The notes beneath the pieces are model-generated. The model saw only the letters and a program-made list of their open reading frames with translations, had not been told where the DNA came from and ran no database searches. The translations under genes were made by a program, and so were the position numbers. This document shows positions 20,510 to 50,629 of a DNA stretch of 64,000 bases, piece after piece. Numbering within the stretch: position 1 is the first letter of the stretch; every line of letters begins with the position of its first letter. The DNA comes from Monocercomonoides exilis PA203 (Eukaryota; Protista; Preaxostyla): contig LSRY02000013.1 in assembly GCA_001643675.2 (NCBI GenBank), forward strand, positions 682,001-746,000, in the 5' to 3' direction.

Positions 20510-20938
20510 TATTGTCATTAATAATTTTTTTTTGACATTTTAAACTTCGTTTTTTTTATTATTTGTTCCATTTCACAAAATTTCGACAAATTGAAGTTTT
20601 AATATGAATGAACGAGATTTTTCGTAATTCTAAACGCGGAAATATGAATATAATTAACAAAAAAGGATTCTAAAAATGAATAAAACATCAATTTTATTTA
20701 TGATCGTGATTATTATTCAGAAAAACTTGCATTTGGATAATTTTTGTTTCTTTTACTTCAAACTAAGTGATTTTGATTTAAAATTTCTGTAATGAACATA
20801 AATATCATTTTTTCAAACATTTTTCAACATTGGTGTTTATTTTCGAAGTCATAACTTTTTTCTGTGTGATGATTTTCAAAATGTTTTATTCCTTTGGAAA
20901 AGAATTCTCCATTTATTGAGCAAAAAATATAGGACATC

Positions 20939-21280
20939 GCACACAATACCGGACAAGATCAATTTCACAATAACCACAAGAGGAATAATTCTGATAATTT
21001 TTATCAAAATATACACCATCAATACAAACTCAATTGATAAACGAGACTTTCAGGACAGCTTCGCTTGAGCTCAGAAAAAATAAATGTCGAAATTTCGGAG
21101 AAATAGAATTTTGAGTTTATCAAAGATTTCGATATTAATTTTTTCCGAGCATAAACGAGGAAGAAATGAAAGTCTTGTTTATCAAATGTGTTTGTATTGA
21201 AAAGATATATTTTGATAAAAATTATCAGAATTATTCCTCTTGTGGTTATTGTGAAATTGATCTTGTCCGGTATTTTGTGC
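20939..21280. repeat. Inverted repeat, 75-bp arms (20939-21013 / 21206-21280), 192-bp spacer
   Basis: Arms are reverse-complementary with one mismatch (GCACAcAATACCGGACAAGATC...ATCAAAATATA). Confidence 0.9.
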
Positions 21281-23633: not shown

Positions 23634-26600
23634 ATGCTTTTGTTCCTTTTTGCATGTTTGATTCTTGGAAATACATTTGAAGCACAAGATGTCTCTGGAA
23701 TTGCCATATTTCAAAACAAAGGTATTCTTTCGAATTGTTATTTTTTCAATTATTCTCTTTATTTGGGTTCAGGTTATTCAAATGATGCACAATATCTGTC
23801 AGAGACCGATAGCAATTATATATTTGAGCAGAATGCATTATTAGAAGTGAAAAGATTACAGTCAGGACTTTCTACAGTGAAAAACACTATTTTGGGATTC
23901 CGCAATTCTACAGTTGGACTGAAAAATGTGGCAATTGAGCATTCTTCTTCAACATGTGTGCTGATAACAGACAAGTCGAATTTGATGTTGGATTCCTGCA
24001 TCTCTCACCAAAAATTGGAATCTCCGTTTTTTTTGCAAAGTGGGGCAATCTGCCTTTCAAACATGAGCGTAATACACCAAAAGAATGTTTATTCACCCGG
24101 CCTCATATTTTCATCTGATGATTCAAGTGTTGCCATTTTGAGGAATTCCATCATCACAGATCTGGCTGTATCCTCTTCAGGCTATTTCCTGTTGTCTGGA
24201 AAGAGCCAAAGTGAACAGATTGATAATTGTGCCTTCAGGAACATGTCAGTGAAATTAGACAATGGCAATGATTGGAACGTGGAACATTCATGCTTGTTGA
24301 GTTCAATGGATAACTGCTTCATTTATTTGTGTGTGAATGCCTTTGAAGGAGGGATCTCAAGTGGATCCTTTTCTTCAGAGAAATTTATCTGCAAAAACGC
24401 AACAATAAGCGACGGGAAAAGAGAAATGAATGCTCTTGAGAAAAAAGGACAAATGAACTTAACAAATAGCCAATCCTTTTCATTGTGTGAATGGGTTGAC
24501 TGCACCGCACCACAAGGAGGTGCTCTTTATGTTCATGACAATGAAAATGCAACTCTCAGAGTTGAGAATTCTTCCTTTTTGAGATGCAATGCTTCCTCGG
24601 CAAGAGGAGGAGGAATGTATACATTGAAAATCGCTGAATGCATTGTGCTCCATTCCACATTTGTTCAATGTTCTGCTGAAACAAGCAGTGGCTACGGAGG
24701 CGGAGGAATTTCATCAGAATATGTTGATGCACAGACAATGGTTGATGATTGCTCCTTTTATAACTGTTCTTCTAAAGTTGATGCAGGAGCAATGTTTCTT
24801 CGAACGACAAAAACAGACAAACAGAAAGAATGCATTATTAATTCATATTTTGATAACTGCCGATGCAATAGATCAACTGGAAATGTAGGTGGAGCAATAG
24901 AACATTGGGAATGCACTGATCAAGTAATTATTTCAAATTGTTTTTTTTGTCATTGCTATTCAATGCAGGGAGCAGGAGCTGTTGGTATATTAATTAATAG
25001 TTACAATCACGGAATATTGTTTTATTACTGCTTTTTCCATAATAATACATGCGTTGCAGGGGGTCATGATATTGTTCTTTATAATTCAACATCAAACAAC
25101 ATTGATCCCACATGCTATTCAACAAGGAATACATCAAACAGAGTCAGCACAGATTATTCTAAAACTGTTGATAAAAGCGAATGGCTTAGAAACGATTTTG
25201 GAATAATGAGATATGTCTCCTCAGTGCAAACAGAACCTTGTACAACTGATGCATATGCATGTGGGCTGAACGAAAGCTATCCTTGTGGAACTATCAGGCA
25301 TTGCTTGACTCAGCTTATTCCTGATATTGTCACAGATATTGAGATACTCACAGGAACGATCACAGAAACCAAGAATGTGGATTGCGGAATTAACACTTTC
25401 ACAATATATGGCCAAAGTGATTTGAGTTCAACAGTTCAAATAGAATTTGAAGCATCTGGTTTGTCTCTTTTTTCTGTATCAGCGGGAACATTGACCGTAA
25501 ATAACCTTGCCCTTGTGCATGACTCAGCACATGCAAATAATCGAGCTTCGAGGCTATTTGAGATCACTGGAACAGGAGAGATGCATATAAGTGGGCTGAA
25601 CATATCTGTTGGGAGCGGACAATCATCAGAAACAGCGTTCACCACTGAGCTTATTAATGTTCAGAGTGGGATGTTTCAGATGGAAAATGTGAACTGGGCA
25701 AAGACCATCTCCACTTTTTCGTTGTTTTCGCTTTCTTCGACAAACGAAATTTCATTGACACTTTCAGAATGTGCCTTCAGTGGAATTGAAAGAACAACCA
25801 GCGGAGCAGCTGTGATGTCGTTTTCTAATGATAAGGCAAATATCGATCTGGATTCTTGTTCATTTTTGGAATGTGGAAGCAGAACTTCAGCTGATGGAGG
25901 ATCGATGATGCTATGTGCCGGAGAAGTGAATGAAGTGAAAGTGAAAGGCGGGACCTTTAATGAGTGCTATTGCTCAGCAACAGATGGCCTTGGGGGAGGA
26001 ATCCTTCTTCGATTGATGAAGGAAAATCCAAATTTCCTGATTTCTTCTTCCTTTGGCACAAACACAGCCAAATGGGGGAATGATATCTTCGTCTTATCAC
26101 CAAATCTGGAAATGACTGCAAAATCAAAAAAGATCTCGTGCGTTACAGATTCATTGGATTCTGTTGACAAAGTGCAGGGATATGACAATGGAAATACGAC
26201 TATGGAAATCCCTCTGTGCATCTATCTCCTTCCAATTCCAGAAGAAATACATGTGAGCAGCACCGAGGCATCTGACCATTCCCATTGTGGAATTGTCCAA
26301 TTCCCTTGTTTGACAATGAAGCACTCCCTCACAAGGCTTACAGGTGAAAAGAAAGTTGCTGTGAATGGAATAATTTTGATAAGCGATGAATTGGCCTTCT
26401 CTGATCAAAAGCATGAAATCCGAGGAAATGATGATCAAAGTGGTTGGACGGTGTCTGATGCAAGTTCAATTTCCAATTCAGCGATGATAACAGCAAGTAC
26501 TGAAACAGAATTATCAACACTTATCTTTTCTCTTCCTCCTACTCTTTCATCACACTCCATTTTTATTTCTTCTTCTTCGCAACTGACTTTGTCTCGTTGT

Positions 26601-29600
26601 TCTTTAACTCTTCAAGATTCTTCATCAGAATTGGTATCCTTATTCTTATCCATTGCCTCAGGAATCCTGACAATTGATTCGTTTTCTGCTTCGTCTATCA
26701 CCGTGAGTGAAAATCCATTGATCTCATTGCCTGGAAGTGACTCAAAGGCTGAGTTAACGAGCAATCAGTGGTTGAACATGACGAACTGCACTTTTTCTGA
26801 AATCGAAAGAGCAGCTGGAAGTGGAAGCTGTGTTAGCGTTGACAACAGCGATGATGAAAATACGAACACACAAATAAATATTGAAGAATGCATTTTTGAT
26901 GAATGCTCTGTGCTGAATGATGGAAGCAGAGGAGGGGCAATCAATGCTCAGCTGAAAGGGAATACTCAATTGAACATTATTTCATGCACATTCACAGGAT
27001 GCACAGCACCAACTGGAGAAGAAGGGAAGACTGGCTTTGGGGGAGGAATGGCACTGAAGTTGATTGATGATGGTTCTTCGTTTGTGATCTTATCACCTGT
27101 TTTTGAGGCAGACAAGCCAAATGTTGCAAAATATGGAAATGATCTCTTTGTTGAAGCATTCAACTTGACAAAGAGCATCACAAACACCTCACTTCCATTT
27201 GTATCTGGGCATCTTGCTGATGTTTCATTGAATTCCATGAGAGGCTTTGATGGGAGTGATACAATGAATGCCATTCCATTGATGTATTTCTGGCTTGCAA
27301 TCAGCTCAGAGATATTCATTGGATCTGAAGGAAGAGATACGCGTGCCTGTGGGTTCTCAGATTATCCCTGTCTTTCAATTGATTATTCTTTGGATCGATT
27401 GCCAGGAGGAAGTGAAAAGAATATAACCATCATTGGAAAAGGAATTCTTCAGAAAAGTGTTGAACTCTGTGGAATCTCAATAAAATCGGATGTTACAAAT
27501 AAATGCTCTTTGGAATGTCACTCATCGCTTGAAGGAGCAGAAGGAGCAGCAATGAAGATATCTGGAATAACCAATTTCGAACTGATAAAGTTTGTTATTC
27601 CATCTTCATTCACAAGTGGAGTCAATTATTTGATGCATGTTGACTCAAGCGATGGGTCGTTGACTGTGAAAGACTGTTCGTTCACAAAAAATGAAGAAAG
27701 CGGAGAAGAAATAATCAACTATGGGTTGATCAAGGCAGATGGAGGCACAGTCCAATTGGAATTGGTGTCAATTCAATCGCTATCTTTTTCACATGATGTT
27801 ATTTCTGTGTTGTCAGCAACAATATTGAACATCAAAAATCTGACGACGAAGAATATTGAGCTGGATGGGGCAAGTGGATTGAGGATTTCAAAGAGTTCAG
27901 GGAGAGAGAAAAATGAAGCTGAACAAGATGTTGTTATTGAGTGGAGCATATTCGAAGAAGTCACTCAAAACACAACTGATGATATTCCCATCATTCGGAA
28001 TTACAATGATGAGCCTTTGAAAGTTGCGATTCGAAACACAACGATGAAGAAGTGTGGCGGAACGAGGTGTGGAAAGGGAGGAGGGATGTTTTGTGTGTTG
28101 AATGAGGGAGGAAGCTTCGACTGCTCATTTTGCACGATTTCTGAGTGCTTCTGCTCCACCATTGGAAGAGGCGGCTGGCTGTTTCTGGAGTGTTCCTCGA
28201 CAGTTGAGCAGCCTCTGAATTTTGTCCTTTCGAATATCACATTCAGAGATAACTCTGCATTGAGAGGGAGAGATGCGTATGTGAGATGCCACTCAATCGA
28301 TTCACAAATAATTGACGAACAATTCTTGCTGGATTTCAGAGCACCGTTTGTGAAAGAGCTGGCGATATGGGGATGCACAACAGATTCGTTTGTTGGGGAA
28401 GAAGATCTTTTGCTGAGGGTTGTGAAATACCAGAGCGAGACGATATTTGTGTCTTCTGTTTCTGAAAATCATACAGACAGCAAGCAATGCGGAGAGTTCA
28501 ACATGCCTTGCCAATCATTGGATACGGGAGTTCAACATATCATTCCTTCATCATATTCTCAACTGCTAATCTCAAAAGAAACAGTTGTTGTTGGGGAATG
28601 CGAAGCGAAGGATGTGATCATCCGCTCACTTCAATCTCCCACAGCTGCTTTGGTTCATCTGAACTCAACAATAACCAACGATGGCAGTATTGTCACAACT
28701 TCAGAGAATGTTCGGATTGAGAAATTGAAATTCAACTTTGGGAAGTCATTTTGTTATTCTGGAAGTTCTATCATTCATGAAGGAAGTGGCGAACTATCTC
28801 TTTCAATTGTTGATTTTTCTTCAATTGGAGAGATAAATAGCATTGAAACTGTTGTTCTGAATTCAACCTTGTTAAGCGTCGAAAGTGGAATTTTTCACAT
28901 TGACAACTGCTCAATTTCAATGCTTTCATTCCAGAAGCCTTCATTTCTGTTAAAAGGAGATGAGACAAATATTACAAATGTGAAACTGGAACAAATTGAA
29001 TCAACAACAGATGTGTTTGAGATTGGGCAGTGCAAAGAAGTTGCATTTAATTGGGTTGTGGCTGATGAAGTGGAGCTGTCTGAGGGCTGCATCATTGCGA
29101 TTCATGGTTCGAATTCAGGAACAATTTCGATTGGAATTTCCTCATTCAACAACTGCTCAAGGAATTCGGAAGGATCTTCTGTTCTCTCTGTTTCTTCAGC
29201 TTCAGCACAAATAACATTTTCAAACTGCTCTTGCACGAATTGTATTTCATTGTCTGAAAAAGGAAGTGTTGTGGAGGTGAGCAATTCAACGAATGTTTTG
29301 ATGGATTCATGTCGATTTGTTGGAGTTTTTGAGAAAGAAATTGATAATGACAGAATTAATTCTTTTGAAGAAATCTGCGAATGGAGTGGATCACTTGTTC
29401 ATTCAGCGAATTCTTTATTGATGATGAAGGATGTGACAATATCGAATTCTTCATCAGGTGGATTTTCAGTTTCCGCTGGCAGTGTGACGATTGAGAAAGG
29501 AGAGTTTATGAACAACAATCCATTCATTGGAAAATATCCATCGGTGAGAAGAAACATTATTTGCTCAGATTCTGCTTCACTGACTATTTCCAGTTTGAAA

Positions 29601-31360
29601 GGAGGAGATGGATTGAAAGATAATTCTTCTCTTTGGATTTTGAATGATGGATGCACCCTTGGTGGAATATCAGGAGAAAGATCATCTCCTTTCTTCATTC
29701 CAAAGCACGAAGAGGCATCTCTCATTGAAAATGGAAACAATGTTTCAATGAAATTCAAAGGAGCACTTCTTCTTCCTTGTGATTTGTCATTCAGACTGGT
29801 GTATAAAACAGGGGATGTGGAGTTGGTTGAGACATATCCTTTTGAGGAAGACAGTTTTATATCAGAAACGGAAGTGATTGGAAGAATCCCATCAGAAAAT
29901 ATTTCAACGATTGCAGATGAAACAGAGGTGTCAGTGATGATTCTGTTTGGAAAACAATTGGCTGCTACTTCTTCACAGATTCTGAAGAACAGAAGTGAGT
30001 CCAAGGAGGATGGAGATAAAAGAATTGTTGAAGGAGGAAAAGAAAGAAAATCTTATTGGTTGCTAATTGTGATCATTATGGCTATTGTTCTATTGATTGT
30101 TCTGATTGTTTCTGTTATTCTTGCAGTCAGATGGAGAAAGGCAAAGAATGAAGCAGAAGATCTGAGAGAGATTGTGAATGATAACATCAGAAAGGATCCG
30201 AAGGCATTCGAGATGGTAACAATGGAGATGTCGCCAGAAGAGCAGTGGAGGAGAGCTGAGAGGGAGGCTGAGAAGAAGAATGAGGAGAGGATGAAGAAAA
30301 GAGTATATGCGAAAAGCCTTCAGCATTCAGAGTCATCTGAGCATTTGCTGGCTGAGAGTGGATCGACTGAATACATCCTGGGAAAAGATTCAGACAAGAT
30401 CCCTGAATGGATGCTGGAGAAGGTTGATGATGAGGAAGAGAAAAGAAAGAGATCTCCTTCACCATCCATTTCATCCACTTCATCCACAGACACATCAGAC
30501 ACAGAGTCCACTTTTGTTCGGAGGGAAGATCTGTGCCCAACCACATCATCGATGTCGAATCTGGTGGATGCAATCGCATGCTCATCACCTCACGAGAAGC
30601 TGATTGTGGACTTGAGGGATTCACTGTTCATGTTGCTTCATGGAAGGAACGAGAAGAAAGAGATGGCGATTGGGAGTGTGAAAGAAAGGGAGATGACAGC
30701 TGCCCAAATCTTGTTCTGGGTAGCTAATCTAGCACTCCACTCCTTTGATGAGATGGAAAACAAGCTTCAGTCACTTGCCAATCTGAGTCCACATATTGTG
30801 CTGTTCTCCGAACACATGGTCATCTGCATTGTCATGCATTCAGACCTTTTATCAGATAACTCTGATTCATCATCGATCTCATCATCAACTGTTATCACGT
30901 CTGCAAGTGATGATGATGATGATGAAAGTGACTCCCTTCCCTCATCCGCCTTTGAGGATGAAGATAGCTTCAAAAAAGAGTGTTTGAGGTGGAAGGCACC
31001 AGAGCTGCTGATCAACAAGAACATGGGGGCAACAAAGAAGTCGGTGGTGTTCTCGATCGGGATGATGCTGTGGGAGTGCCTGACGCTCCAGATCCCGTTC
31101 GGGGAGCATGAGGCTGTGATTGCTGGAGACAAGATTGCAAAGGAGAGGCTTTGAGCATGTGCGGAAATACTGCAAGCACATTCTCTTTGGTCGTCAGCGA
31201 ATGCCTCTCCTTTCAGCCTTCCAACCGGCCTTCGCTCGTCTCCATTTCGAGAGAGTTCTTTCAGAAGTTCCCCGAGTCGGCCAAGCTCCCCACAATGACT
31301 GACGCACTCTTCACAAACCAGCAATCTGCCATCAGCAGAAACAGCTGCTGCAGCTATTAG
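23634..31360 (+). CDS. Giant single-pass surface receptor-like protein A: signal peptide, beta-helix-type repeat ectodomain, TM, degenerate kinase-like tail (~2575 aa; 1-nt frameshift at 31139-31141 as assembled)
   Basis: MLLFLFACLILG signal, GGA[LI]/FxxN motifs, four CGxxxxPC modules, TM YWLLIVIIMAIVLLIVLIVSVILAV, kinase C-lobe motifs RWKAPELL and SVVFSIGMMLWECLTLQIPF. ORF 31151-31360 supplies the last 69 aa that are in frame in the mirror copy. Confidence 0.85.
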
Positions 31361-34300
31361 TGTTTGCTTTTCTCATTCCATCACAAGCATCGCCATCGTT
31401 CACACCCCTCGTATTCATCTCTTAATCTCTCTCTTTTTTCTTTTTTGCTTTTGGCGAATAATTACAAGAAAGAATGAAATAAGCGCTGCCCATGGCCTCT
31501 GAAGGCTTTCTTTTCTTTTCTTTTCTTTTCTTTTGTTTCTGTTGCCTCCAAACAGGGCTTGGCATTTGCCAGCCAGAGTCTGATGTTTGCGTTTTTCTGT
31601 GTTGTTTTTTCACTTCGCTCGAAAGTGATTTTTCACAACCACTTTCGTTTTATTGCTTGTAAATCCACTTCAAAATGGAAAGACATCGAGCCAAATGATT
31701 TCTGAAATCCTTTGATCTTCCTCTGTGAATTGCCTTCTTCTCTGAAATGAATGATCCCTGAAAAATAAATCCCAGCATCCTTGCTTTGACTCAGCCAAGA
31801 AATCAAAATCAAAAATGTAATTCCACTTTCACCTGCGCAAAAACCCAGAATGCACCTTTCTCAGCCTTGGCCAAATTTCTAGAGTCATGCCAAGATGACT
31901 TTTTTTTATTCATTCAAAACATGAAATATGTCAATATAAAAATCGTTGAGATAAAAATAACAGCAAACGATGTGAAAGGAAATGGCACTCAAGGAAATGA
32001 GAGGCTTCAAATAAGTTCCATCAAAACGAAGAGAGAAACACTCTGGAATTTATTTTTTTTATTGAGAGCTCATTGCCTCCTTCTTTCAAACGATTCAAGA
32101 CATAAGGCAAGAAGCTGAGTCATCTTGTGCATTCTTGCAGCGATTGCACCCAGCATCTTGCATTCCCATTCCATCCCAAAATAACTGCATTCCCCAATGA
32201 AAAATTCCCACCTCTATTAACATGGCACAGATTCACAGAGTATCCCCTTCCACTTTGTCATCCTTTTTGAGTTTCGTCATTGATCATCAACAAGGCACTT
32301 TCAGCCGAAGCATAAATATCTCTTCCCTTTTGAAATAGAAACGCGCTTTCGCTGCCAATGACACAAACAAAAATTAGGCACTCAAGCTTCAGCTTTCAAT
32401 TAACTTGCGATGCTCCAGGGGGAAAATGAAATAAAAAAAAATGTAATTGTGAACCAATGGAACATTTGCTGGCCATTTCTTGAACGCTCCAACTTGATCT
32501 GAACATCGCTTCTCTGCTTCCATTTGCATCATCCCTTGTTTCCAGTTTGAAGAATCTGTTATCACTACAGCTCCGCGCCCTCCAATCAACACACGTACCT
32601 GCTAGTTGGATGCATGCCCGCCAAAAAATGAGCTGTTTTTCTTTTTCCCCATATCCTTTTCCTTCCAGAATCTGTCTTTAAGGTATAGCAACGATACAAA
32701 TACCGAAGCACGCAAAATCATTTGTCGGCAAGCGCATCAGATGATCAATGTCAATTTCAGTTCTTGTTCATTCAGCCATTTTCTTTGCTTTTCGCAGGCA
32801 AACATCCCTCGCATTTTTGCTTTCCACAAAATGTGACATGGCGCCTGCACATTTTGGAGGGAAAAAAAAATTAAAAGGAAAAGTGCCAATAAAAGCAAAC
32901 TGAACTGGATCCTCTTCAGTTGGCCATTTCCCAAACGATTTTTCTGCCAATATGGCTCTTATGGAATTTCTCAACAAAAAAATTCTAAAAAAGAAAAGAG
33001 CTGGTCTTTTCAACAAAAGCATCCTTTCCATTCATAAAAATTCCAAACCTCTTTTTTTCCTAGCACCTGCAATGCATTCAATATTTTTATGTTCAGATCC
33101 TCAAGCAGAAGCAAAGGAGGGACTCTTTTTCCATTTTTGGGGAAAAAAATAAAACAACAAAAAGGCATTTCATGCTCGATATCGGACAGTTCCAAAAGAT
33201 TGCATGCCTTGAGATAAACTTTATTGCTTTATTGCGAGCAGTGTCTTTCTGTGCTGGCACCAGCCATTCCCTCGTTTTTTGAGTCATCGAAAAGAATCTC
33301 CACAAAAATGAGGGGGAAAAAATAAAAGAACATTATCATCTGACATGAAAATAGCTTTTGCTCAGTGGCTTCTTGCAACGGTCGCTCATCGCCAAACAAC
33401 CACAGTCCGGCACACACAAATTGATAGGAAAACAAAAATCATCTTCCAAATGACACGCTCTCCCCACAAATTGCAGACTTTGCTCAACGCTTAATTTCTA
33501 TCAAATCCAGCAGCTTAGCATGTTCATCCGTTTTTGTGCCGCCTAAGAGCAAATGCACGTTTTTTTGTTCTCAATTTTTGATTTTGAAGAAATAATTATT
33601 CGTTGATCATTTCGCTTCCAAATCCTTAAAACAAAGTGTGCATATTTATTATTAAAATGCAAATATTACAGCAAATCAATTTATTATCTGTAGGCTTTGA
33701 TGCAAAATGAAAACATTCTAGAGAATGAAAAATTAATTTATTTCTAATAAAAATCATGTAAAAAGTCATTGAATTTTCAAAAGATGAATATTAAAATTTG
33801 ACTTTTGAAAAAGAATATTTTCACAATTAATTTTTATTTTTATAGAACAATTATATTGACATTCTTTCAAAGTTAATAAGTGAAAAGATTCAAAAAATGA
33901 AAAAAAAGATCAAAATATAATAAAAATATTTCTTTTTGATGAGTGAGACAGAAGAGGAAGTGAGGATGTGGCTAAACGTAATCGGTATGTATGGAGTAGG
34001 CGTCACTTCACTGATTCAAAGATACGTTGATGGACACCTACACAATTCTAGAACTGGAATCGGTATTGATTTCAAATCAAAAAATGTTTCTGCTGATGAT
34101 AAAAATGTTCAGGTGTATTTTATTGATGTTCCTTTCAATCATCTGACTTTGATTCCGAGAGTTTATTTTCGAGTGTCAGATGCTTGCGCACTTGTCTTCA
34201 GACTGTCGTCGCGTGATTCTTTTGATTGCTTGAAAGAGATGAAAAAAAAGATAGACAACTTAATGGCGAATGCTTCGAGTGATTGTCCGCTTATCGTTAT

Positions 34301-34603
34301 TGGAAATGGAAGTGATCAGAGGGAGCATCGGGCTGTCAACCGATTCGAGGTGGAAGACTGGTGCAAAAAAGAGGGATTTTGTGGGTATTATGAGGCGTCA
34401 GCAGAAACAGGAGAGAATGTGGATGAGGCATTCACAGAGATGGTACGGCTGGGTTTGGATTACCACGAATCCAAACCCGTTGAAGCAGATGAGGCTGTTG
34501 CAGAGAAGCCATCTGCCAAAAACGAGAAAACATCATTCAAATGTTTTCTGATGTGAAATAGAGGATTTCTTCAATTAATTTTTTATTTATTTAATATTAT
34601 TTA
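30138..34603 (+). repeat. Left arm (4466 bp) of 9.3-kb palindrome
   Basis: Every ORF here has a mirror in 34970-39435 (coordinate sums 69572/69573). Differences found: one substitution (30179/39394) and two homopolymer indels (31139-41, 33560-66). Confidence 0.97.
33939..34556 (+). CDS. Divergent Rab-family small GTPase (Rab7/Rab32-like), degenerate G-motifs, CaaX end; copy 1
   Basis: Ras-fold pattern with Rab motifs IGIDF, YFR, EASAETGENVDEAF. G1 GMYGVGVTS, G3 DVPF, G4 NGSD. Ends CFLM. Intronless, 205 aa. Confidence 0.85.
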   Translation: MSETEEEVRMWLNVIGMYGVGVTSLIQRYVDGHLHNSRTGIGIDFKSKNVSADDKNVQVYFIDVPFNHLTLIPRVYFRVSDACALVFRLSSRDSFDCLKEMKKKIDNLMANASSDCPLIVIGNGSDQREHRAVNRFEVEDWCKKEGFCGYYEASAETGENVDEAFTEMVRLGLDYHESKPVEADEAVAEKPSAKNEKTSFKCFLM

Positions 34604-34969
34604 TAGTTGGGTGCAAAACCCGCACTTGTGCAAAAACCCGCACACTTAACATTTTCTTTCGAAATACTCTTCCACTTTTATATATGTAAAAGCGTTTGGC
34701 ATTTTGATGCCACCTGTACCTTTTTTTTGTCCAATATTAAGTATTTCGAATGAAAAATCAAAAACAAAAATATTTGATCAAAAGATCAAAAAAGATCAAA
34801 ATTTTTAGTTTTTGATTTTTCATTCGAAATACTAAAAATTGGACAAAAAAAAGTCACCGGTTGCATTAAAATGCTAAACGCTATCAAATATATGAAAGTG
34901 GATGAGTATTTCGATAGAAAATGTCAAGTGTGCGGGTTTTTGCACAAGTGCGTGTTTTGCACCCAACTA
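34604..34969. mobile_element. Fold-back MITE (366 bp) at the palindrome centre
   Basis: TA|TAGTTGGGTGCAAAACCCGCAC...GTGCGTGTTTTGCACCCAACTA|TA. ~176-bp arms with ~19 mismatches and a 14-nt loop (34780-34793). Doubled GTGCAAAA(A)CCCGCAC subterminal repeat shares CAAAACCCG with the pogo TIR at 51685. Confidence 0.75.
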
Positions 34970-37900
34970 TAAATAATATTAAATAAATAAAAAATTAATT
35001 GAAGAAATCCTCTATTTCACATCAGAAAACATTTGAATGATGTTTTCTCGTTTTTGGCAGATGGCTTCTCTGCAACAGCCTCATCTGCTTCAACGGGTTT
35101 GGATTCGTGGTAATCCAAACCCAGCCGTACCATCTCTGTGAATGCCTCATCCACATTCTCTCCTGTTTCTGCTGACGCCTCATAATACCCACAAAATCCC
35201 TCTTTTTTGCACCAGTCTTCCACCTCGAATCGGTTGACAGCCCGATGCTCCCTCTGATCACTTCCATTTCCAATAACGATAAGCGGACAATCACTCGAAG
35301 CATTCGCCATTAAGTTGTCTATCTTTTTTTTCATCTCTTTCAAGCAATCAAAAGAATCACGCGACGACAGTCTGAAGACAAGTGCGCAAGCATCTGACAC
35401 TCGAAAATAAACTCTCGGAATCAAAGTCAGATGATTGAAAGGAACATCAATAAAATACACCTGAACATTTTTATCATCAGCAGAAACATTTTTTGATTTG
35501 AAATCAATACCGATTCCAGTTCTAGAATTGTGTAGGTGTCCATCAACGTATCTTTGAATCAGTGAAGTGACGCCTACTCCATACATACCGATTACGTTTA
35601 GCCACATCCTCACTTCCTCTTCTGTCTCACTCATCAAAAAGAAATATTTTTATTATATTTTGATCTTTTTTTTCATTTTTTGAATCTTTTCACTTATTAA
35701 CTTTGAAAGAATGTCAATATAATTGTTCTATAAAAATAAAAATTAATTGTGAAAATATTCTTTTTCAAAAGTCAAATTTTAATATTCATCTTTTGAAAAT
35801 TCAATGACTTTTTACATGATTTTTATTAGAAATAAATTAATTTTTCATTCTCTAGAATGTTTTCATTTTGCATCAAAGCCTACAGATAATAAATTGATTT
35901 GCTGTAATATTTGCATTTTAATAATAAATATGCACACTTTGTTTTAAGGATTTGGAAGCGAAATGATCAACGAATAATTATTTCTTCAAAATCAAAAATT
36001 GAGAACAAAAAACGTGCATTTGCTCTTAGGCGGCACAAAAACGGATGAACATGCTAAGCTGCTGGATTTGATAGAAATTAAGCGTTGAGCAAAGTCTGCA
36101 ATTTGTGGGGAGAGCGTGTCATTTGGAAGATGATTTTTGTTTTCCTATCAATTTGTGTGTGCCGGACTGTGGTTGTTTGGCGATGAGCGACCGTTGCAAG
36201 AAGCCACTGAGCAAAAGCTATTTTCATGTCAGATGATAATGTTCTTTTATTTTTTCCCCCTCATTTTTGTGGAGATTCTTTTCGATGACTCAAAAAACGA
36301 GGGAATGGCTGGTGCCAGCACAGAAAGACACTGCTCGCAATAAAGCAATAAAGTTTATCTCAAGGCATGCAATCTTTTGGAACTGTCCGATATCGAGCAT
36401 GAAATGCCTTTTTGTTGTTTTATTTTTTTCCCCAAAAATGGAAAAAGAGTCCCTCCTTTGCTTCTGCTTGAGGATCTGAACATAAAAATATTGAATGCAT
36501 TGCAGGTGCTAGGAAAAAAAGAGGTTTGGAATTTTTATGAATGGAAAGGATGCTTTTGTTGAAAAGACCAGCTCTTTTCTTTTTTAGAATTTTTTTGTTG
36601 AGAAATTCCATAAGAGCCATATTGGCAGAAAAATCGTTTGGGAAATGGCCAACTGAAGAGGATCCAGTTCAGTTTGCTTTTATTGGCACTTTTCCTTTTA
36701 ATTTTTTTTTCCCTCCAAAATGTGCAGGCGCCATGTCACATTTTGTGGAAAGCAAAAATGCGAGGGATGTTTGCCTGCGAAAAGCAAAGAAAATGGCTGA
36801 ATGAACAAGAACTGAAATTGACATTGATCATCTGATGCGCTTGCCGACAAATGATTTTGCGTGCTTCGGTATTTGTATCGTTGCTATACCTTAAAGACAG
36901 ATTCTGGAAGGAAAAGGATATGGGGAAAAAGAAAAACAGCTCATTTTTTGGCGGGCATGCATCCAACTAGCAGGTACGTGTGTTGATTGGAGGGCGCGGA
37001 GCTGTAGTGATAACAGATTCTTCAAACTGGAAACAAGGGATGATGCAAATGGAAGCAGAGAAGCGATGTTCAGATCAAGTTGGAGCGTTCAAGAAATGGC
37101 CAGCAAATGTTCCATTGGTTCACAATTACATTTTTTTTTATTTCATTTTCCCCCTGGAGCATCGCAAGTTAATTGAAAGCTGAAGCTTGAGTGCCTAATT
37201 TTTGTTTGTGTCATTGGCAGCGAAAGCGCGTTTCTATTTCAAAAGGGAAGAGATATTTATGCTTCGGCTGAAAGTGCCTTGTTGATGATCAATGACGAAA
37301 CTCAAAAAGGATGACAAAGTGGAAGGGGATACTCTGTGAATCTGTGCCATGTTAATAGAGGTGGGAATTTTTCATTGGGGAATGCAGTTATTTTGGGATG
37401 GAATGGGAATGCAAGATGCTGGGTGCAATCGCTGCAAGAATGCACAAGATGACTCAGCTTCTTGCCTTATGTCTTGAATCGTTTGAAAGAAGGAGGCAAT
37501 GAGCTCTCAATAAAAAAAATAAATTCCAGAGTGTTTCTCTCTTCGTTTTGATGGAACTTATTTGAAGCCTCTCATTTCCTTGAGTGCCATTTCCTTTCAC
37601 ATCGTTTGCTGTTATTTTTATCTCAACGATTTTTATATTGACATATTTCATGTTTTGAATGAATAAAAAAAAGTCATCTTGGCATGACTCTAGAAATTTG
37701 GCCAAGGCTGAGAAAGGTGCATTCTGGGTTTTTGCGCAGGTGAAAGTGGAATTACATTTTTGATTTTGATTTCTTGGCTGAGTCAAAGCAAGGATGCTGG
37801 GATTTATTTTTCAGGGATCATTCATTTCAGAGAAGAAGGCAATTCACAGAGGAAGATCAAAGGATTTCAGAAATCATTTGGCTCGATGTCTTTCCATTTT

Positions 37901-39435
37901 GAAGTGGATTTACAAGCAATAAAACGAAAGTGGTTGTGAAAAATCACTTTCGAGCGAAGTGAAAAAACAACACAGAAAAACGCAAACATCAGACTCTGGC
38001 TGGCAAATGCCAAGCCCTGTTTGGAGGCAACAGAAACAAAAGAAAAGAAAAGAAAAGAAAAGAAAGCCTTCAGAGGCCATGGGCAGCGCTTATTTCATTC
38101 TTTCTTGTAATTATTCGCCAAAAGCAAAAAAGAAAAAAGAGAGAGATTAAGAGATGAATACGAGGGGTGTGAACGATGGCGATGCTTGTGATGGAATGAG
38201 AAAAGCAAACACTAATAGCTGCAGCAGCTGTTTCTGCTGATGGCAGATTGCTGGTTTGTGAAGAGTGCGTCAGTCATTGTGGGGAGCTTGGCCGACTCGG
38301 GGAACTTCTGAAAGAACTCTCTCGAAATGGAGACGAGCGAAGGCCGGTTGGAAGGCTGAAAGGAGAGGCATTCGCTGACGACCAAAGAGAATGTGCTTGC
38401 AGTATTTCCGCACATGCTCAAAGCCTCTCCTTTTGCAATCTTGTCTCCAGCAATCACAGCCTCATGCTCCCCGAACGGGATCTGGAGCGTCAGGCACTCC
38501 CACAGCATCATCCCGATCGAGAACACCACCGACTTCTTTGTTGCCCCCATGTTCTTGTTGATCAGCAGCTCTGGTGCCTTCCACCTCAAACACTCTTTTT
38601 TGAAGCTATCTTCATCCTCAAAGGCGGATGAGGGAAGGGAGTCACTTTCATCATCATCATCATCACTTGCAGACGTGATAACAGTTGATGATGAGATCGA
38701 TGATGAATCAGAGTTATCTGATAAAAGGTCTGAATGCATGACAATGCAGATGACCATGTGTTCGGAGAACAGCACAATATGTGGACTCAGATTGGCAAGT
38801 GACTGAAGCTTGTTTTCCATCTCATCAAAGGAGTGGAGTGCTAGATTAGCTACCCAGAACAAGATTTGGGCAGCTGTCATCTCCCTTTCTTTCACACTCC
38901 CAATCGCCATCTCTTTCTTCTCGTTCCTTCCATGAAGCAACATGAACAGTGAATCCCTCAAGTCCACAATCAGCTTCTCGTGAGGTGATGAGCATGCGAT
39001 TGCATCCACCAGATTCGACATCGATGATGTGGTTGGGCACAGATCTTCCCTCCGAACAAAAGTGGACTCTGTGTCTGATGTGTCTGTGGATGAAGTGGAT
39101 GAAATGGATGGTGAAGGAGATCTCTTTCTTTTCTCTTCCTCATCATCAACCTTCTCCAGCATCCATTCAGGGATCTTGTCTGAATCTTTTCCCAGGATGT
39201 ATTCAGTCGATCCACTCTCAGCCAGCAAATGCTCAGATGACTCTGAATGCTGAAGGCTTTTCGCATATACTCTTTTCTTCATCCTCTCCTCATTCTTCTT
39301 CTCAGCCTCCCTCTCAGCTCTCCTCCACTGCTCTTCTGGCGACATCTCCATTGTTACCATCTCGAATGCCTTCGGATCCTTTCTGATGTTATCGTTCACA
39401 ATCTCTCTCAGATCTTCTGCTTCATTCTTTGCCTT
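34970..39435 (-). repeat. Right arm (4466 bp) of 9.3-kb palindrome
   Basis: Reverse complement of 30138-34603. Confidence 0.97.
35017..35634 (-). CDS. Divergent Rab-family small GTPase; copy 2, identical protein
   Basis: Translation identical to 33939-34556. Confidence 0.85.
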   Translation of the reverse strand: MSETEEEVRMWLNVIGMYGVGVTSLIQRYVDGHLHNSRTGIGIDFKSKNVSADDKNVQVYFIDVPFNHLTLIPRVYFRVSDACALVFRLSSRDSFDCLKEMKKKIDNLMANASSDCPLIVIGNGSDQREHRAVNRFEVEDWCKKEGFCGYYEASAETGENVDEAFTEMVRLGLDYHESKPVEADEAVAEKPSAKNEKTSFKCFLM

Positions 39436-42400
39436 CTTCCAGCGAACAATGAATATTACTGCAATAATTAAAATGAGGAGAAGAACAATAGCCATAATGA
39501 TCACAATCAATGCCCATGATGATTTCCCTTCTTTTCCTCTTTCAGCAATCCTTTCATCTCCGCTTGTCTGAGACTCACTCTTGTTCTTCAGAATGAATGA
39601 ATCAGTTGATGATGGAGCATCCATTTTTCCAAACAATATTGAAACAGTCACCTCTGCTTTCTCTTCAGCGTCACGAATTGATTTTGAAGGAATCATCCCC
39701 CAAGCTTCATCCTCTGAGACAAACCCTCCAGATTTGAACTCGTATTGCTCCACCAACGCCTCAGAACGAATGGCTGTTACAACTCGAAACGACAAGTTGC
39801 AAGGCAGAAGAAGTTGCCCTTTGAATATCACTTTCAATTCTGTTCCTTTTTCTTCCATCTTCACATTTTCCAAAAAGGGAACAAACAGAGGAGATTTTCT
39901 TTCTTGAGCCATCCCGCTCAGTGTGCATCCTTCGTTCAAGAGCCACAGCGATCCGTTCTTTTCCTGCCCGTCTCCTCCTTTCAGGCTCACAACATTGACA
40001 GTTCCGCTTCCTCCACACGCAATGTTCCTTCTTGCTGAAGGGTATTTCTCGATCCCCGGATCATTTAGCATGAATTCGCATTTCTCGATGAGCAAGTGTC
40101 CGCCCGTTGCAGTTACACCTCCTTTTGGAAAGTTCTTGATTGTGGTTTCCTTCATGGTTGCATTGCTGTTGGCAAACGAAACAGCTGAGGTTGTCCATTG
40201 GCAAATGCCTGCTTCTCTGCCGTTTTCACTTTTTCCTGAATGAATCAAGTCACCTCGAAGCACGTTCCAATATAACGTCACATTGCTGCATTCCGCAAAA
40301 GTCATCACGCTTCCTGCCTCAGACTTCGACGAGGCATTGGAATAAGAGCAATTCGCCAAATAAATCCCTCCCTTGAATGATAAACAAGCAATGACTCCTT
40401 CCTCCTGCTGTGCAGATGAAACATTGTCAAATGACACATCTTTGAGTTCAACACTTCTTTCGCCTCCGCTCTTTGGCTGCTCAGAAAATGATTGCTCCCC
40501 TTCAATCAAAATGAAAGTGCCTTTGTTCAGAACAACATGATCCACTTTCATTTCAGAGAGAAGCACACAGCCATCCAAATGAGCGACTCGGATAGACGCT
40601 TCAGCAGAAAAGTGCATGTGAGATATTTTTATCTGAGAAGCTGTGACTTGCCCATCCTCGATTGAGATGAGTGTTAGTCCGATTGCCTGAGCGCTGATTT
40701 CTTCCTGTGATTGGGCAAAGCTGCATACAAGCAACGACAGGCTTCCAGAACCTGCTGTGAGCAAAATGTGGTGTGCTGAAGAAAAGTCTGAGCCAAAGAA
40801 AAACTCAATCTTCGAGACAGAAACGCTTCCTGCAGTTGATATAATGCTGGCTCTTGTGTGAGGAATATCGGGGAATATGGTGAGTTTCGAGGGATCTTCC
40901 TTTCGAGATGCGATTGAAAGATCTTCGAGATCCATCTCCTTTTCGACAAACGACTCGCCATCCACCAGAAGTCTGCTTTCCACATCGTTTGTCAAATGGC
41001 TGAGTGCATAGCCGATTGTCAGGCACGGGAGCTTCAGTGTTCCGCACTGCCTGTCGTTCTTCCCGTTGCTGGAGGGAGCGGATGACAGGATGATGGTGTC
41101 TGCCTGGTGGATTGTGATGAAGTCCATCAGATTTGTGTCGCACTGGTAGTTTGTGAAGTCGATGCCGTAGATAGCATTCAACCGCGTGTATGCAGTTTCT
41201 CGCAAGTCAAAGCAGAACTGTGTCTCGTTGATCTGATTCTCGATGTCAACACACTCCACAAACACATCATTCCCCACTTTTGCGCTGTTTCCTTTGAATG
41301 TCATCTTCTCAAACAGGAATGAGAGGGCGCCTCCAAAACTGGTGCAGATGAAAAGCCCTCCTCCTTTTCCGTTGTTGTTGCTGCATCCGCACTGAATCAC
41401 TGACGACTTGCTCATCGACAGCGCTCCTCCACTCTGAAGCTCCTCAAAGGCTCCTCCGCCTCTTTCAGAGCCAACTGCCTTGCACGAATCGAAAGTGCAT
41501 CCGCTGATTGATATCGCCGAGGCGCAGCCAGATGAGCTGATGATTGCAGGCCCGTTGCCATTCCGAGTGATCAGCTGGAATGTGGAGTCTTTGATGGAAA
41601 CAGAGCAGTCAGCAGCATTCTCCTTTTGATATGAGCGAGAAACTATTTTCACAAAACTTTCGCCAGAGAATGTGCATCCCGAAGCCACAAGATGCTGCAT
41701 CGCACAATCGCATCCGTTGCTGATCGCAAACACCCCCATCTCCGACATCACATTCTCAACTGACAGATTCGAAACATTCAGCACTCCACCTTCCATCAGC
41801 AAAAAGCCAACCTTCGCTGGAGCATCTCCACGAGTCTCAGTGGAAAACGAGCAATCGCTCATCTCAATCAGCCCACTTTTCCCAACGATGGAAAACAGCT
41901 GTTCGTTGCAAAACCCTTCCGACAGTGCAACCGCAATCCTGTTGAGCTTCAATATTCCCTCATTGTTTATAACAGGGTCAGTTCCACTTTCTGTCTTGTT
42001 TGCAAATATCAGCTTCCCTAGACTTTGCTCTTCTGTTTCGTCATGCTCAATAACATGGTTGGAGAGCACGAACGAGTCCTGCACAATTGTCTCATCTGCT
42101 ATTTTTATCCACTTCTGAGGAGCGCCTTCGTCCATCTGCCTCATCCCTTTCCACATGCTCCTGCACGGATCCTCTTCGTTTCCGCATCTCATAATATCGT
42201 ATCCACCAGAGCTCACAAATATTGTTTGGCTTGTGTATGTCTCCAAGAAACGGAGCAGGGTGGTGTCTTCCCAGACCAAATCTCTTCCACAAAACAGCAG
42301 CACGTCTTCTCTGCTTTTCCTGAAGTCAAAGCAGAGTGTTGAGAGTGTCACACTTTTGTTCAGATTGCCTGCCGAGATGAACATGTTTTTCCCTATCTGC

Positions 42401-45400
42401 GCCTTGTGACCAGCAAATGAAACATCTTCTCCAAAAACAAAAGGATTTTCCGTTGAGGAACCTTTGGATTCAACAAATATAAACCCTCCTCTCCCATGTT
42501 CTTCAGAGCAACCACAGCCAACCGTTTCTGTCTGGCTCATCGAAAATGTTGCTTCATTCAACAGCTCCACGCAAACAGCACCTCCCTTCTGACTCGACTT
42601 TGCAGATATCGACGAAAAATTGCATCCGATTATTTCACACGAAGAATTCAGTTGGACAGGCGTTGACGAGAAAGACAGCGAAGAGAAATCACAATTCAGC
42701 AACTGAACGTCACCTGCTTCAGAATGAATGAGGCAGAACTCCAAGTCTGATGCGCTGTTTCTGTTGAAGGTGCATCCATTGAGCGAAAGGCAAGAATCGG
42801 CTGATTCAGAGTGGAGAAGAATATTTTCGTTGTTTGTGAAAGAAGAAGGAAGCGAAAACTGAATCATTTCCAACTTCAATTCTTTCGAGTTCTGAATAAT
42901 AGATTTTTTCTCTTCGCTTGCTTCCATGGCATTCTCGAACAGCACCACACACCTCTCATCTGCCCTGTTGGACATCACTCTGAGCGATGAGAGATCGTAA
43001 TGATTTTTGATATTTCCCCTTGAATCAATCCGTATCACTCGATCATGTGCTTCCAAATCGATGTTTTCATATCCTCTCCAAAATGTCTGGCAAGGGAACT
43101 CTGCACTTCCACATCCCAAAATGTCCATTCCACCCCTTGAAACAAGAATCGAACTCTCCTTCCTTTGGATCAAGAACAAGAGAAGATCAACAGCTGATCC
43201 TTTCAGCAAAACATTATCTGTGCCTTTCAAATCAACAATGTTTTCGTTTTTCTCGTTCTGCAGCTGAAACGCAAACCTTTGTCTCACAGCAGATGCATTC
43301 ACATCTGTGCTCAAAACAAACATGTCATTCCCTTCGAAGGCGCAATTGTCTGCAAATGTTATTTCTGTCAGTTTGATGTTCAGCAGGGGATTCTCTGAAA
43401 TGTCCAAATACAGCCCGCCTCCTCTTCCGTGATTCGCGTTTGCAGAACACGAGCTGATGCTTGTCCCGTTGATCTGAACATCGCTTTCTCCCTCAACAGA
43501 AATAAGCCCACATCCGCCGTTCCCTCCTTCGTTCGTGCAGTCTGTCATGCTCGTCCCATTCTTCCAGTTCAGGATCTTCACTTTCTTCAGCACAGCAAAC
43601 CCACCATTCCCAAATGAGCAGTTTGTGCTTCTCAATTCATTCAGCAAAACCTCTGTTCCGCCTTCTCCAACAAGCATTCCAATTCCGCTTGATCGGATGT
43701 TGCTCACTTCCATACTGTCAAAAGTGCAACCAGCTTCTCCGCTCAAAAAGATTCCGCAATCAGCATTGAACTTCATGTTCTTTACGATCACTCCATCGAA
43801 TGAGATCTTTCCTCCCCTTCCTGTTATTATCCGCATGTTTGTCTCTACAGATGCTTCTGGATCAGCACTTCCAAATGAACACCCCACAAAATATGTTGTG
43901 CCCACGCAAACTTCTACCAGTTCAGTGAAATCTGATGTTTGAGGCAGCTCAAATCCAATCTTCGAAAATGTCAGTGTTGTGAGTGCAGTGCCAACAGCCA
44001 TCTTCAAGTGCCCCTCTTTTGTCACAATTAGCTGGCTCCCGTCATCTCCTTTCCCTTCAATCGTCATCGGATCGTTATCTCTCTCTATTGCTCCCCTCAA
44101 TTCGCAAGAAGAAATAATCTGCAGAATGCGCTTGTCCTCGGTCATTTTCCCAGAAGCGAGCCAAAGCTCGTTGCAAGGATAATCGTCTGCGCCACAGCCG
44201 TCTGTGTGGCCATTGAGCGTGTTGACATAAATGATTTCGTCAGGTCTGGGAAACAGGTATTTCAGAAGCGTGTCTGTTCCGTCCGGAAATGTTGGATCAA
44301 TCACCCACATCGTTTTCTCCTCCTGGCCTTCTGTGGCTGATCCTGACCATTTATTTCTGTCAATCGTCATCCGCGGAGTGGGGCACACAAGATACACATC
44401 GTATCCCAGCATCGCATCGTTGCTCAGGAATTTGTTGTTTTTCATCGAGTATCCAACCTCGCTGCTCAAAAACTCGATGTGCATCCCTCCGCCCAGACCA
44501 TCCGCTTTCTTCACTTTGCTCTCTTCAACTGTGTTGTTGTTGAACTGCAGCTCCCCATTGGCAGACACACTTGTGATGATGCTTCCACCTTTCGAGCCAC
44601 TCGCCAAGCAGCTGATTGCTGTGAATGAACAAAAATTCACACTCAAACTCTTTCCGGCTCCAACTCTCCCCGTAACCACCACTCCCTTTCCTTCGTTCCT
44701 CGTCAAAAGACTGAAGTTGCTCTTTTCAACTGTTGCACTCGACAATTCTTCAACGAATAAGACCCCGTGGTTCCCAAACTGTGCTGGGCCAGACACATTC
44801 GAGTTTTTCATTTCCACATGGCTGCAGGACTTGGCAGCAATCAGCCCTTCGACTGATCCTGTTTTCAGGTTGTTCCACTCCACATCTTCAAGGGTGCATC
44901 GGCTGGTCTCCCCGCTCAATTCAACCACTGGTGCTCCCAGCAGTTCTATTTCGTTCAACACCCCCCTCAGAATATGGAGGGCACCACCTTTCACAATCAC
45001 ATATCCAAAGTCAATCTTCTTCGATTGTGTGTTCACCGAACAATCAATCAGAGAAAGAGCAGAGCCAGTGCAGAGAAACAGGCATTTTCTATTAACTTCC
45101 GTGAATGCTGCAGAAACATTGAATGTTATTCCGCTGAAGTTCACAACATTTCTCGTTTCGACAAGTCCTTCTCCTTCTCCTGATCCATCAGGCAGAATAT
45201 TTATCAGTGTTCCGTTTGCCTCTGCTTCAATGTCCATCACTTGCGAACTCAAAACAATTGGATTCACAAAGCAGAAATGATCTTTGAGTGTCAAATGTGC
45301 CTTTGAATTCCCAAATCTGATCAAGCAGCCATACTGAAGTGTTTCACATGGATAATCAGAAAAACCACATCCTGTGTAATCAAAGCCGTTTTCTTCTGCT

Positions 45401-50112: not shown

Positions 50113-50629
50113 GGATTTATGAAAAAGCACATAATGGGAGAAATTTGGTTGAAAAAACCATAACTGGTTGAAAAAAAAATCAAACAATTCAGAAATTATT
50201 ATCAGAACTTTGTGGAAGAAAAAAACATCGATAAGAGAAATTTTCTGTTTTTATTTTTAATTGTAATATCAAAATTATCAACAAAGAAATATTTAATAAG
50301 AAAATAAGATTTGAAATAATGGTTTTCAGTGTTCATTCTTGAAATTTTATTAGTTTTGTTTCAGGAGAAAAATGGGGGAAATGCGTTTATTTCAATTTCA
50401 GGAAAGCGCTGTAATTTTACAATGAAGTTTCTGATTATGTGGTTCATTCGATAAAAAAACGCTCTTTTTCACTCAAGTTCAGAACAAATCACTCTTCTCA
50501 GTGTGAATAATTTTTGAAAAAAGTATTATTGAAATATTTCTTCTTTCAACAAACTCATTTCTATTTTCATTTCATCAGAAATCACTCCTCTGACACAAAA
50601 AGATTTCGCATTCAGTCGTTTTTCTTCTT

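Follow-up and report, generated by a model that had tools for sequence, protein, structure and literature searches.

The 9.3-kb mirror-image repeat in the Monocercomonoides exilis PA203 assembly was confirmed in the assembled sequence of the window (the whole stretch of DNA analyzed, 64,000 nucleotides of contig LSRY02000013.1), and the MITE at its centre probably served as a hinge for the copying of an extra 0.9 kb, by TIR-anchored fold-back or gap repair within a palindrome that was already there. The initial annotation had credited this element with seeding the entire 4.5-kb duplication, a role that could not be upheld given sister loci on the same contig that are inverted around a MITE-free centre. 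The history reconstructed here would account for the identical cytoplasmic tail found on two giant surface receptors whose ectodomains are unrelated, and also for the doubling of a Rab-like gene.

An inverted-repeat scan and base-by-base mirroring placed the left arm at 30138..34603 (forward strand) and its mirror, the right arm, at 34970..39435 (reverse strand), each 4466 nt long. The arms differ by one substitution (30179 on the left vs 39394 on the right) and two homopolymer indels and by nothing else, the indels being T7 on the left (33560-33566) for T6 on the right and A3 on the left (31139-31141) for A4 on the right, a count to be read with the proviso that polishing in multi-copy regions, described by the authors of the assembly as under-polished (PMC8767320), can erase or create small differences between arms. 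Between the arms lies a fold-back MITE of 366 bp (34604..34969) with TAG...CTA ends and without any ORF reaching 50 aa, the halves of which are 89% complementary and fold as single-stranded DNA into a single hairpin (-155 kcal/mol, z = -34). Its asymmetric 14-nt loop (34780..34793) is the axis of the entire palindrome. The two halves differ at 19 of 176 nt, compared to a single substitution over the 4466 nt of the arms (Fisher p = 7e-27). The geometry first proposed for this region, namely two 4466-bp arms with three differences and a drop in identity confined to a 366-bp centre with ~89% complementary halves, was thus reproduced. An Rfam search of the window returned no match.

The left arm contains the cytoplasmic tail of receptor ORF1, ~2.5 kb devoid of long ORFs and the first copy of the Rab-like gene. 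ORF1 (23628..31154, forward strand) encodes a protein of 2508 aa with a beta-helix-like ectodomain, a TM helix and a degenerate kinase-like tail; ORF2 (38212..50187, reverse strand; 3991 aa) has a different ectodomain. The outer ends of the arms do run in frame into two different receptor genes, as originally described: the ectodomains of ORF1 and ORF2 share 25-42% protein identity, whereas their tails are identical, starting just past the TM helix. As assembled, ORF1 stops earlier than ORF2 owing to the A3/A4 difference at 31139-31141 and, with A4, would end at ~31360. Hundreds of genes share the receptor tail, with 83-86% identity at the DNA level. Flanking the arms, an outer transition zone of patchy similarity (29979..30137, forward strand, mirrored at 39436-39594) covers the codons for the TM and juxtamembrane region; ORF1/ORF2 homology goes no further than this zone, DNA similarity being absent beyond ~29979. 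The first copy of the Rab/Ras-like small GTPase gene (33939..34556, forward strand) ends 47 nt short of the MITE and encodes 205 aa with an altered P-loop and a C-terminal CFLM; it matches Pfam Ras (E = 1e-25) and is annotated as 'putative Ras family' (Monocercomonoides exilis). The second copy (35017..35634, reverse strand) has the same sequence, and an exact-protein look-up of the Rab-like protein retrieved no occurrence outside the present contig.

The palindrome of the window (locus W) belongs to a set of at least four palindromic loci on the contig (W, A, B and C) that are built from the same arm unit, consisting of the receptor tail and ~3.5 kb downstream and present in 13 copies on the contig. 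In an identity matrix and tree of the 13 arms, the two arms of a same locus paired with each other (100% identity in W and A, 99.8% in C, 98.3% in B), arms from different loci were 89-95% identical, and W was nested among its sister loci. Self-alignment of locus A covered at least 6.9 kb at 99.9% identity and could be extended to at least 7.9 kb at 100%; that of locus C covered at least 6.7 kb at 99.6%, and that of locus B 3.84 kb at 97.7%. Because arms are 97.7-100% alike within A, B and C as against 89-95% between loci, conversion appears to operate without any MITE, and we infer from this pattern that arm-to-arm gene conversion keeps both arms of each palindromic locus near-identical. Such conversion had been put forward only as an alternative, and as an explanation of the near-identity it held up well. 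Arm identity ends where the receptor genes lose homology, just past the TM helix.

The centres of A, B and C are asymmetric, homologous to one another and free of the MITE, each comprising a 285-nt A-rich spacer (S) and an 886-nt segment (U) that carries the Rab-like gene, with the same inner boundaries in all three loci. S also comes after G and H, two single arms of the short type, and in inverted orientation after U in D. Compared to A, B and C, where U is single-copy, W lacks S and harbors U twice (33719..34603, forward strand, and its mirror at 34970..35854, reverse strand), both of its arms being of the long type that runs through U up to the MITE. Since A, B and C display the same inverted layout around a MITE-free centre, ~3.58 kb of each W arm would already have been inverted-repeated, and the inverted arrangement, to judge from these sister loci, is older than the central MITE; only the inner 886 nt with the Rab-like gene would represent a MITE-associated novelty of the W arms. 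The possibility that spacer S is a degenerate MITE was rejected by alignment. The arm unit was likewise rejected as a giant-TIR transposon, since its full-length copies all reside on one contig with no terminus in common and its outer ends enter complete, different receptor genes.

The element at the centre of the window is a genuine dispersed MITE. Its family yielded 86 strand-matches with identities of 72-95%, which fall at ~45-50 places spread over more than 25 contigs, with flanks differing from place to place; the dispersed copies with unrelated flanks that had been set beforehand as a test were thus found. Relative to the family consensus, the halves of the W copy bear 6 and 13 private changes, none of them common to both; they have thus decayed independently and are older than the identity of the arms. 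The proposal that the hairpin predates the duplication therefore stood with respect to arm identity, but not with respect to the inverted layout, which A, B and C suggest to be the older of the two. Flanks were inspected in 20 of the ~45-50 copies. A direct TTA or TAA target duplication was seen in L004, L005, L006, L011, L012, L013 and L017; L019 and L020 show it with a single mismatch. Comparison of these ordinary copies corrected the earlier description of the element as TA-flanked to a 3-bp TWA duplication and led to the rejection of a TA (Tc1/mariner-type) duplication. The PIF/Harbinger domain DDE_Tnp_4 (PF13359) has at least 147 matches over the cut-off in the genome. Many copies of the MITE carry private substitutions common to both halves, which suggests hairpin-templated correction.

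At W, the trinucleotides bordering the MITE are TTA and TAA, and thus reverse-complementary rather than direct. The same reverse-complementary TWA was observed in L002, L003 and L007, the flank palindromes of W and these three copies measuring 4466, 727, 361 and 26 nt, respectively. The MITE therefore sits on a palindrome axis in 4 of the 20 copies inspected, and none of these four has kept a direct TWA duplication. L002 is a perfect palindrome reaching a 14-nt loop, with a nested repeat of ~270 bp in either arm, a repeat lacking from typical members of the fold-back family around it. In those members the centre, to judge from the query positions that the two arms reach (289 vs 297-301), is asymmetric; its ~200 nt are missing from L002 rather than split by the MITE. 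The flanks of both L002 and L003 are themselves members of fold-back repeat families.

That the duplication at W reads TTA/TAA and is not direct argues that, beside the MITE, one flank was replaced by a reverse-complemented copy of the other, with the caveat that ordinary arm conversion could erase a single mismatch in the target duplication, making this test alone not decisive for W. The doubling of U, the absence of S and the reverse-complementary target duplication, each set against A, B, C or ordinary copies, all support W as the derived state. In the reconstruction that we favor, the ancestral unit would have consisted of convergent giant receptor genes with a common cytoplasmic tail and ~2.5 kb of downstream sequence, the arms being held apart by a unique 1.17-kb centre made up of S and U with its Rab-like gene. 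At every palindromic locus, arm-to-arm conversion would have proceeded up to a point just past the TM helix, where receptor homology ends. In the W lineage, the AT-rich sequence separating S from U would have received a fold-back MITE of the Tourist-like kind (PIF/Harbinger-type, TWA-duplicating); the empty site is placed approximately, the S/U boundary being low-complexity AT. When a break later arose on the S side, the two inverted halves of the MITE would have supplied the inner homology for its repair: the end left by the break would have paired with the opposite half inside its first 16 nt, synthesis would have moved outward, first across the target duplication and then through U into the arm, and the new strand would have been captured through homology in the already existing arm. 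Such a repair would have erased S, doubled U together with its gene, placed the palindrome axis in the MITE loop and left TTA/TAA where a direct duplication (TTA/TTA or TAA/TAA) had stood, while the inner MITE halves retained their old mismatches. A like event, with a switch point at differing depths in the MITE, may have shaped L002, L003 and L007. Fold-back copying of the opposite flank at the MITE, as initially envisaged, is thus consistent with the inner 886 nt, the TTA/TAA duplication and the loss of S, but not with the remaining ~3.58 kb.

We consider it unlikely that one MITE-primed fold-back made the whole 4.5-kb arm de novo, with no earlier inverted repeat and with resolution in the tail of the convergent receptor. 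The uniform identity of the arms from the MITE out to 30138, and the exact coincidence of their ends with the point from which the receptor tails can be aligned, would suit such an event, and the conservation of the tail in hundreds of genes could have supplied the homology needed. The inverted layout with an S+U centre appears, however, to be ancestral, as seen in A, B and C and in the remnants D, G and H, W is nested in the arm tree, and MITE-free palindromes that are equally identical render a single de novo event unnecessary. Quite unlikely, too, is the reverse order of events, wherein a spacer-less U|U palindrome arose first, the MITE was drawn to the tip of its hairpin or cruciform, and conversion made the target duplication symmetrical. 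Insertion at such a tip would fit the axial position of the MITE in 4 of 20 copies and the fact that L002 and L003 lie in already existing fold-back repeat families; yet it requires two steps, and nothing supports the first, in which S would have disappeared and U been doubled in the absence of inner homology. It also sits poorly with the 19 mismatches of the W halves vs one in the 4466-nt arms, with the lack of a direct TWA duplication in any palindromic copy, and with the missing, not MITE-split, centre of L002.

Very improbable, finally, is an assembly artefact, in which the symmetric centre would stem from a Nanopore read that is a fold-back chimera or from a repeat that was collapsed or wrongly joined. 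The assembly was built with Canu from ONT reads, and both arm indels are ONT-typical homopolymer differences (PMC8767320). A template/complement chimera would nonetheless be perfectly symmetric at the turn, where we find 19 differing sites and an asymmetric loop; the palindrome occupies an interior position on a contig of 1.86 Mb, the genes to its two sides are not the same, and the asymmetric centres of the sister loci cannot come from fold-back reads. Read evidence, all of it short-range, consisted of Logan unitigs from four runs of one sample, aligned to 29201-35200. An exact short-read, non-ONT unitig (2016 run) covers 34923-35042 and hence the right MITE/arm junction; the diagnostic left junction was not among the unitig pieces listed for this sample. 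At 33560-33566, all exact-matching short-read unitigs from all four runs have T6, and the T7 of the left arm is for this reason probably an assembly error, with the appearance of a Nanopore consensus error. Unitigs with an extra A at 31138 bear 3-5 further differences and may come from paralogues.

Returning to repair through the MITE, we tentatively propose that fold-back MITEs are recurrent hinges in M. exilis, where break repair via their paired halves may copy the opposite flank and so make or extend palindromes. If so, hinge palindromes would range from tens of bases to many kb, and receptor clusters would gain duplicated neighbour genes and identical signalling tails on unrelated ectodomains. 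This would constitute a transposon-dependent path to gene duplication and domain sharing, visible genome-wide by its reverse-complementary target duplications, and the TWA duplication turned reverse-complementary would provide a signature for scoring such events across the genome. W itself would represent a naturally fixed hairpin-primed inverted duplication that can be reconstructed, the MITE-free 'before' state surviving on the same contig. Palindrome homogenisation by gene conversion, as read from the pattern of arm identity, would likewise operate in an oxymonad.

The two published M. exilis genome papers mention neither MITEs nor palindromes. Like Tourist-like MITEs, which are non-autonomous PIF/Harbinger elements, the 366-bp element is non-coding and AT-rich, has inverted halves spanning its full length, generates a 3-bp TWA duplication in ordinary copies, occurs in dozens of dispersed copies and shares its genome with DDE_Tnp_4 transposase domains; it differs from them in that many copies have private substitutions in both halves. 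The arms of the ampliconic palindromes of primate Y and X chromosomes are reportedly kept identical by arm-to-arm gene conversion, as Rozen et al. are said to have described in 2003. The M. exilis loci resemble these in being inverted repeats that carry genes and enclose a short unique spacer, and in an arm-to-arm identity (97.7-100%) far above that seen between loci (89-95%). Their arms, however, measure 4-8 kb rather than tens to hundreds of kb, are set in a protist receptor-gene cluster, and end inside genes, such that two ectodomains share one converted tail.

The Tetrahymena rDNA palindrome is a further case of inverted-repeat-primed fold-back duplication. Fold-back inverted duplications primed at short inverted repeats have been described in yeast (PMC7467729) and human (PMC3907307) and as ODIRA (PMC4689423). 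W is akin to such duplications in that its axis is an inverted repeat whose loop survives as an asymmetric spacer, that its two flanks are reverse complements of each other, and that the sequence on the putative broken side (S) is gone. In contrast to them, W is small and interstitial, is neither a dicentric chromosome nor a terminal duplication, and would have been resolved by homology in an earlier inverted repeat; its proposed priming repeat is a transposon, and it became fixed in nature, not under laboratory selection.

An inverted-repeat scan of the window revealed three collinear arm segments about a centre near 34786, and base-by-base mirroring of 30138-34603 against 34970-39435 (4466 nt each) yielded only three differences, namely a substitution (30179 versus 39394), T7 versus T6 at 33560-33566, and A3 versus A4 (31139-31141, mirror 38431-38434). 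The near-identical arms described in the initial annotation were thereby borne out, as was the drop of identity inside the central element: the halves of this 366-bp centre (34604-34969) differ at 19 mismatches about an asymmetric loop of 14 nt, a contrast of 19/176 in the centre to 1/4466 in the arms (p = 7e-27). Folding of the centre as single-stranded DNA gives a single long hairpin (-155 kcal/mol, z = -34). Beyond 30138, similarity between the two sides is patchy until ~29979 and absent farther out. The palindrome is thus real at the sequence level. Two more small fold-back elements (20102-20511 and 20933-21286, self-complementary at 74% and 82%) sit within the AT-rich 18-24 kb of the window (GC 25-31%).

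Also in line with the initial annotation, the arms run into two different paralogous genes, the convergent giant receptor ORFs ORF1 (23628-31154, 2508 aa; left arm) and ORF2 (50187-38212, 3991 aa; right arm), whose ectodomains share only 25-42% protein identity and no DNA similarity. Both end in a degenerate kinase-like C-terminus, and the arm boundary falls directly past the TM helix. The A3/A4 difference, which may be a homopolymer error of ONT sequencing or a true truncating indel, causes a frameshift in ORF1, such that it ends 68 aa before the otherwise identical tail of ORF2. The PA203 ONT assembly was generated with Canu and polished with Nanopolish and then ten rounds of Pilon, its authors stating that multi-copy parts were polished more poorly (PMC8767320); weaker polishing of this kind fits the two arm-to-arm differences in homopolymer length. 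Since T6 was present in all exact unitigs spanning 33560 (Logan short-read unitigs, one sample), the T7 of the left arm is probably an error. Compared with 8 paralogous arms (30138-33600), the ORF-free 2.2 kb 3' of the receptor gene is 90-95% identical between loci and the coding tail (30138-30870) 84-87%, the ORF-free part thus being equally or more conserved; conservation reaches 97% over the final ~300 nt of the kinase-like domain.

The central element proved to be a true MITE, with about 45-50 dispersed copies of 72-95% identity on >25 contigs and in mutually unrelated flanks; a lack of such copies would have spoken against the MITE-seeding model of the initial annotation. In ordinary copies, a direct TTA or TAA duplication of 3 bp lies outside TAG/TGG...CTA/CCA ends (L004, L005, L006, L011, L012, L013 and L017; one mismatch in each of L019 and L020), which refutes the TA-type flanking duplication originally proposed and marks the element as Tourist-like, of the PIF/Harbinger type. 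Genome-wide, the PIF/Harbinger transposase domain DDE_Tnp_4 has at least 147 matches above the Pfam cut-off; many lie within open frames of 300-590 aa, and they are frequently clustered locally (e.g. C62:192-235k, C22:115-133k). Relative to the family consensus, the window MITE has six private changes in its left half, 13 in its right half and none shared, and the two halves have thus decayed independently. Elsewhere in the family (L002, L006, L008-L012, L019, L020), the halves of one MITE share private substitutions and pair in the half-tree, which suggests hairpin-templated correction or regeneration of the element out of one half.

Thirteen copies of the 4466-nt arm were found (~88-92% identity), every one on C7, the contig that holds the window (C7:682001-746000); the receptor tail (the arm's first ~1 kb) has 83-86% matches to hundreds of genes. 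Besides the window, inverted pairs occur at three loci: palindrome A (C7 598001-614997, L031 and L032; arm at least 7.9 kb, arm-to-arm identity 99.9-100%), palindrome B (about 653-662k; 3.84 kb, 97.7%) and palindrome C (about 290-306k; at least 6.7 kb, 99.6%). In total, A covers at least 17 kb and may reach farther. A tree built on the 3.46 kb common to the arms groups them locus by locus into pairs, with a difference of 5-10% between loci. That arms are so much closer within than between loci requires arm-to-arm gene conversion, the alternative raised initially, which, on sequence comparison, appears to act without any MITE. A, B and C share one order: a short arm to ~33700 (window numbering), an A-rich spacer of 280-325 nt (S), the reverse complement of a segment U, and a long arm. 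S, homologous across the three loci, was ruled out as a MITE; it also lies downstream of single arms G and H and, reversed, downstream of U in the remnant D. Because this architecture is common to A, B and C and S accompanies the G, H and D arms, the asymmetric S+U centre is ancestral, a threefold independent origin of identical inner boundaries being implausible.

U (33719-34603, 886 nt) contains a Ras/Rab-like ORF of 205 aa, found at the end of each window arm (33939-34556 and 35017-35634; Pfam Ras, E = 1e-25) with its stop 47 nt from the MITE; no long ORF lies in the ~2.5 kb separating it from the receptor tail in either arm. Its product exactly matches the record 'putative Ras family [Monocercomonoides exilis]', has an altered P-loop with valine for the conserved lysine (GVGVTS) and ends in a CaaX-like CFLM. 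The ORF is intact in both window copies, B and D (dN/dS 0.37-0.57, window versus B and D copies) but is interrupted by in-frame stops in A and C; it may encode a pseudo-GTPase under some constraint.

Both window arms are of the long type, running through U up to the MITE, and S was not found within the window. The derived changes here would therefore be that S has been lost, that U and the Rab-like gene in it have been doubled, and that a MITE occupies the axis. The trinucleotides flanking this MITE, TTA and TAA, are reverse complements rather than a direct duplication, as they are in three other copies with palindromic flanks, L007 (26 nt), L003 (361 nt) and L002 (727 nt). The switch point within the MITE differs from case to case, mirror symmetry being perfect until 16 nt inside the element in the window (flank 4466 nt), until 104 nt in L003 and to the 14-nt loop in L002. 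The latter is a perfect 1.8-kb palindrome (L002:774-2587; C6:240338-242151) whose MITE sits inside a fold-back repeat of a different family. In typical members of that family the centre is asymmetric (~205 nt), and a nested repeat of ~270 bp, present identically in both L002 arms, is missing; one arm was thus copied onto the other. This nested repeat is very abundant (>1000 first-look candidates). These end products are seen directly; for their formation, we infer pairing, synthesis and capture. After a break adjoining the MITE, the broken half would pair with its own inverted partner, synthesis would proceed outward across the opposite flank until the newly made strand was captured through homology farther out, provided in the window by the 3.58-kb arm already present.

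The initial interpretation is partly supported: the true MITE stands and so, probably, does its alternative of arm conversion. The proposal that a one-step fold-back on the MITE created the whole 4.5-kb duplication is disfavoured by the ancestral architecture, A, B and C sharing inverted arms about an S+U centre that is free of MITEs. If instead a perfect palindrome had formed first and the MITE had later inserted precisely at its centre, an unsupported first step would be required and direct duplications would be expected, none of which is seen at the palindromic copies. An assembly artefact is unlikely given a centre that is asymmetric through the turn, a structure internal to a 1.86-Mb contig and the asymmetric centres of the sister loci; a unitig from 2016 short reads also matches the right MITE/arm junction exactly (34923-35042), although the same junction is expected in an S-MITE-U structure.

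The MITE-primed copying favoured here within an existing palindrome would leave the inverted target duplication as a simple sequence signature, and the sister loci provide a useful internal control for the locus as a whole. The window locus would combine two known processes in a new way, gene conversion between palindrome arms and hairpin-primed fold-back. The MITE-primed copying is of the same class as inverted-repeat-primed fold-back duplication (PMC7467729, PMC3907307, PMC4689423) but, unlike the known cases, is interstitial, transposon-primed and nested inside an older palindrome.
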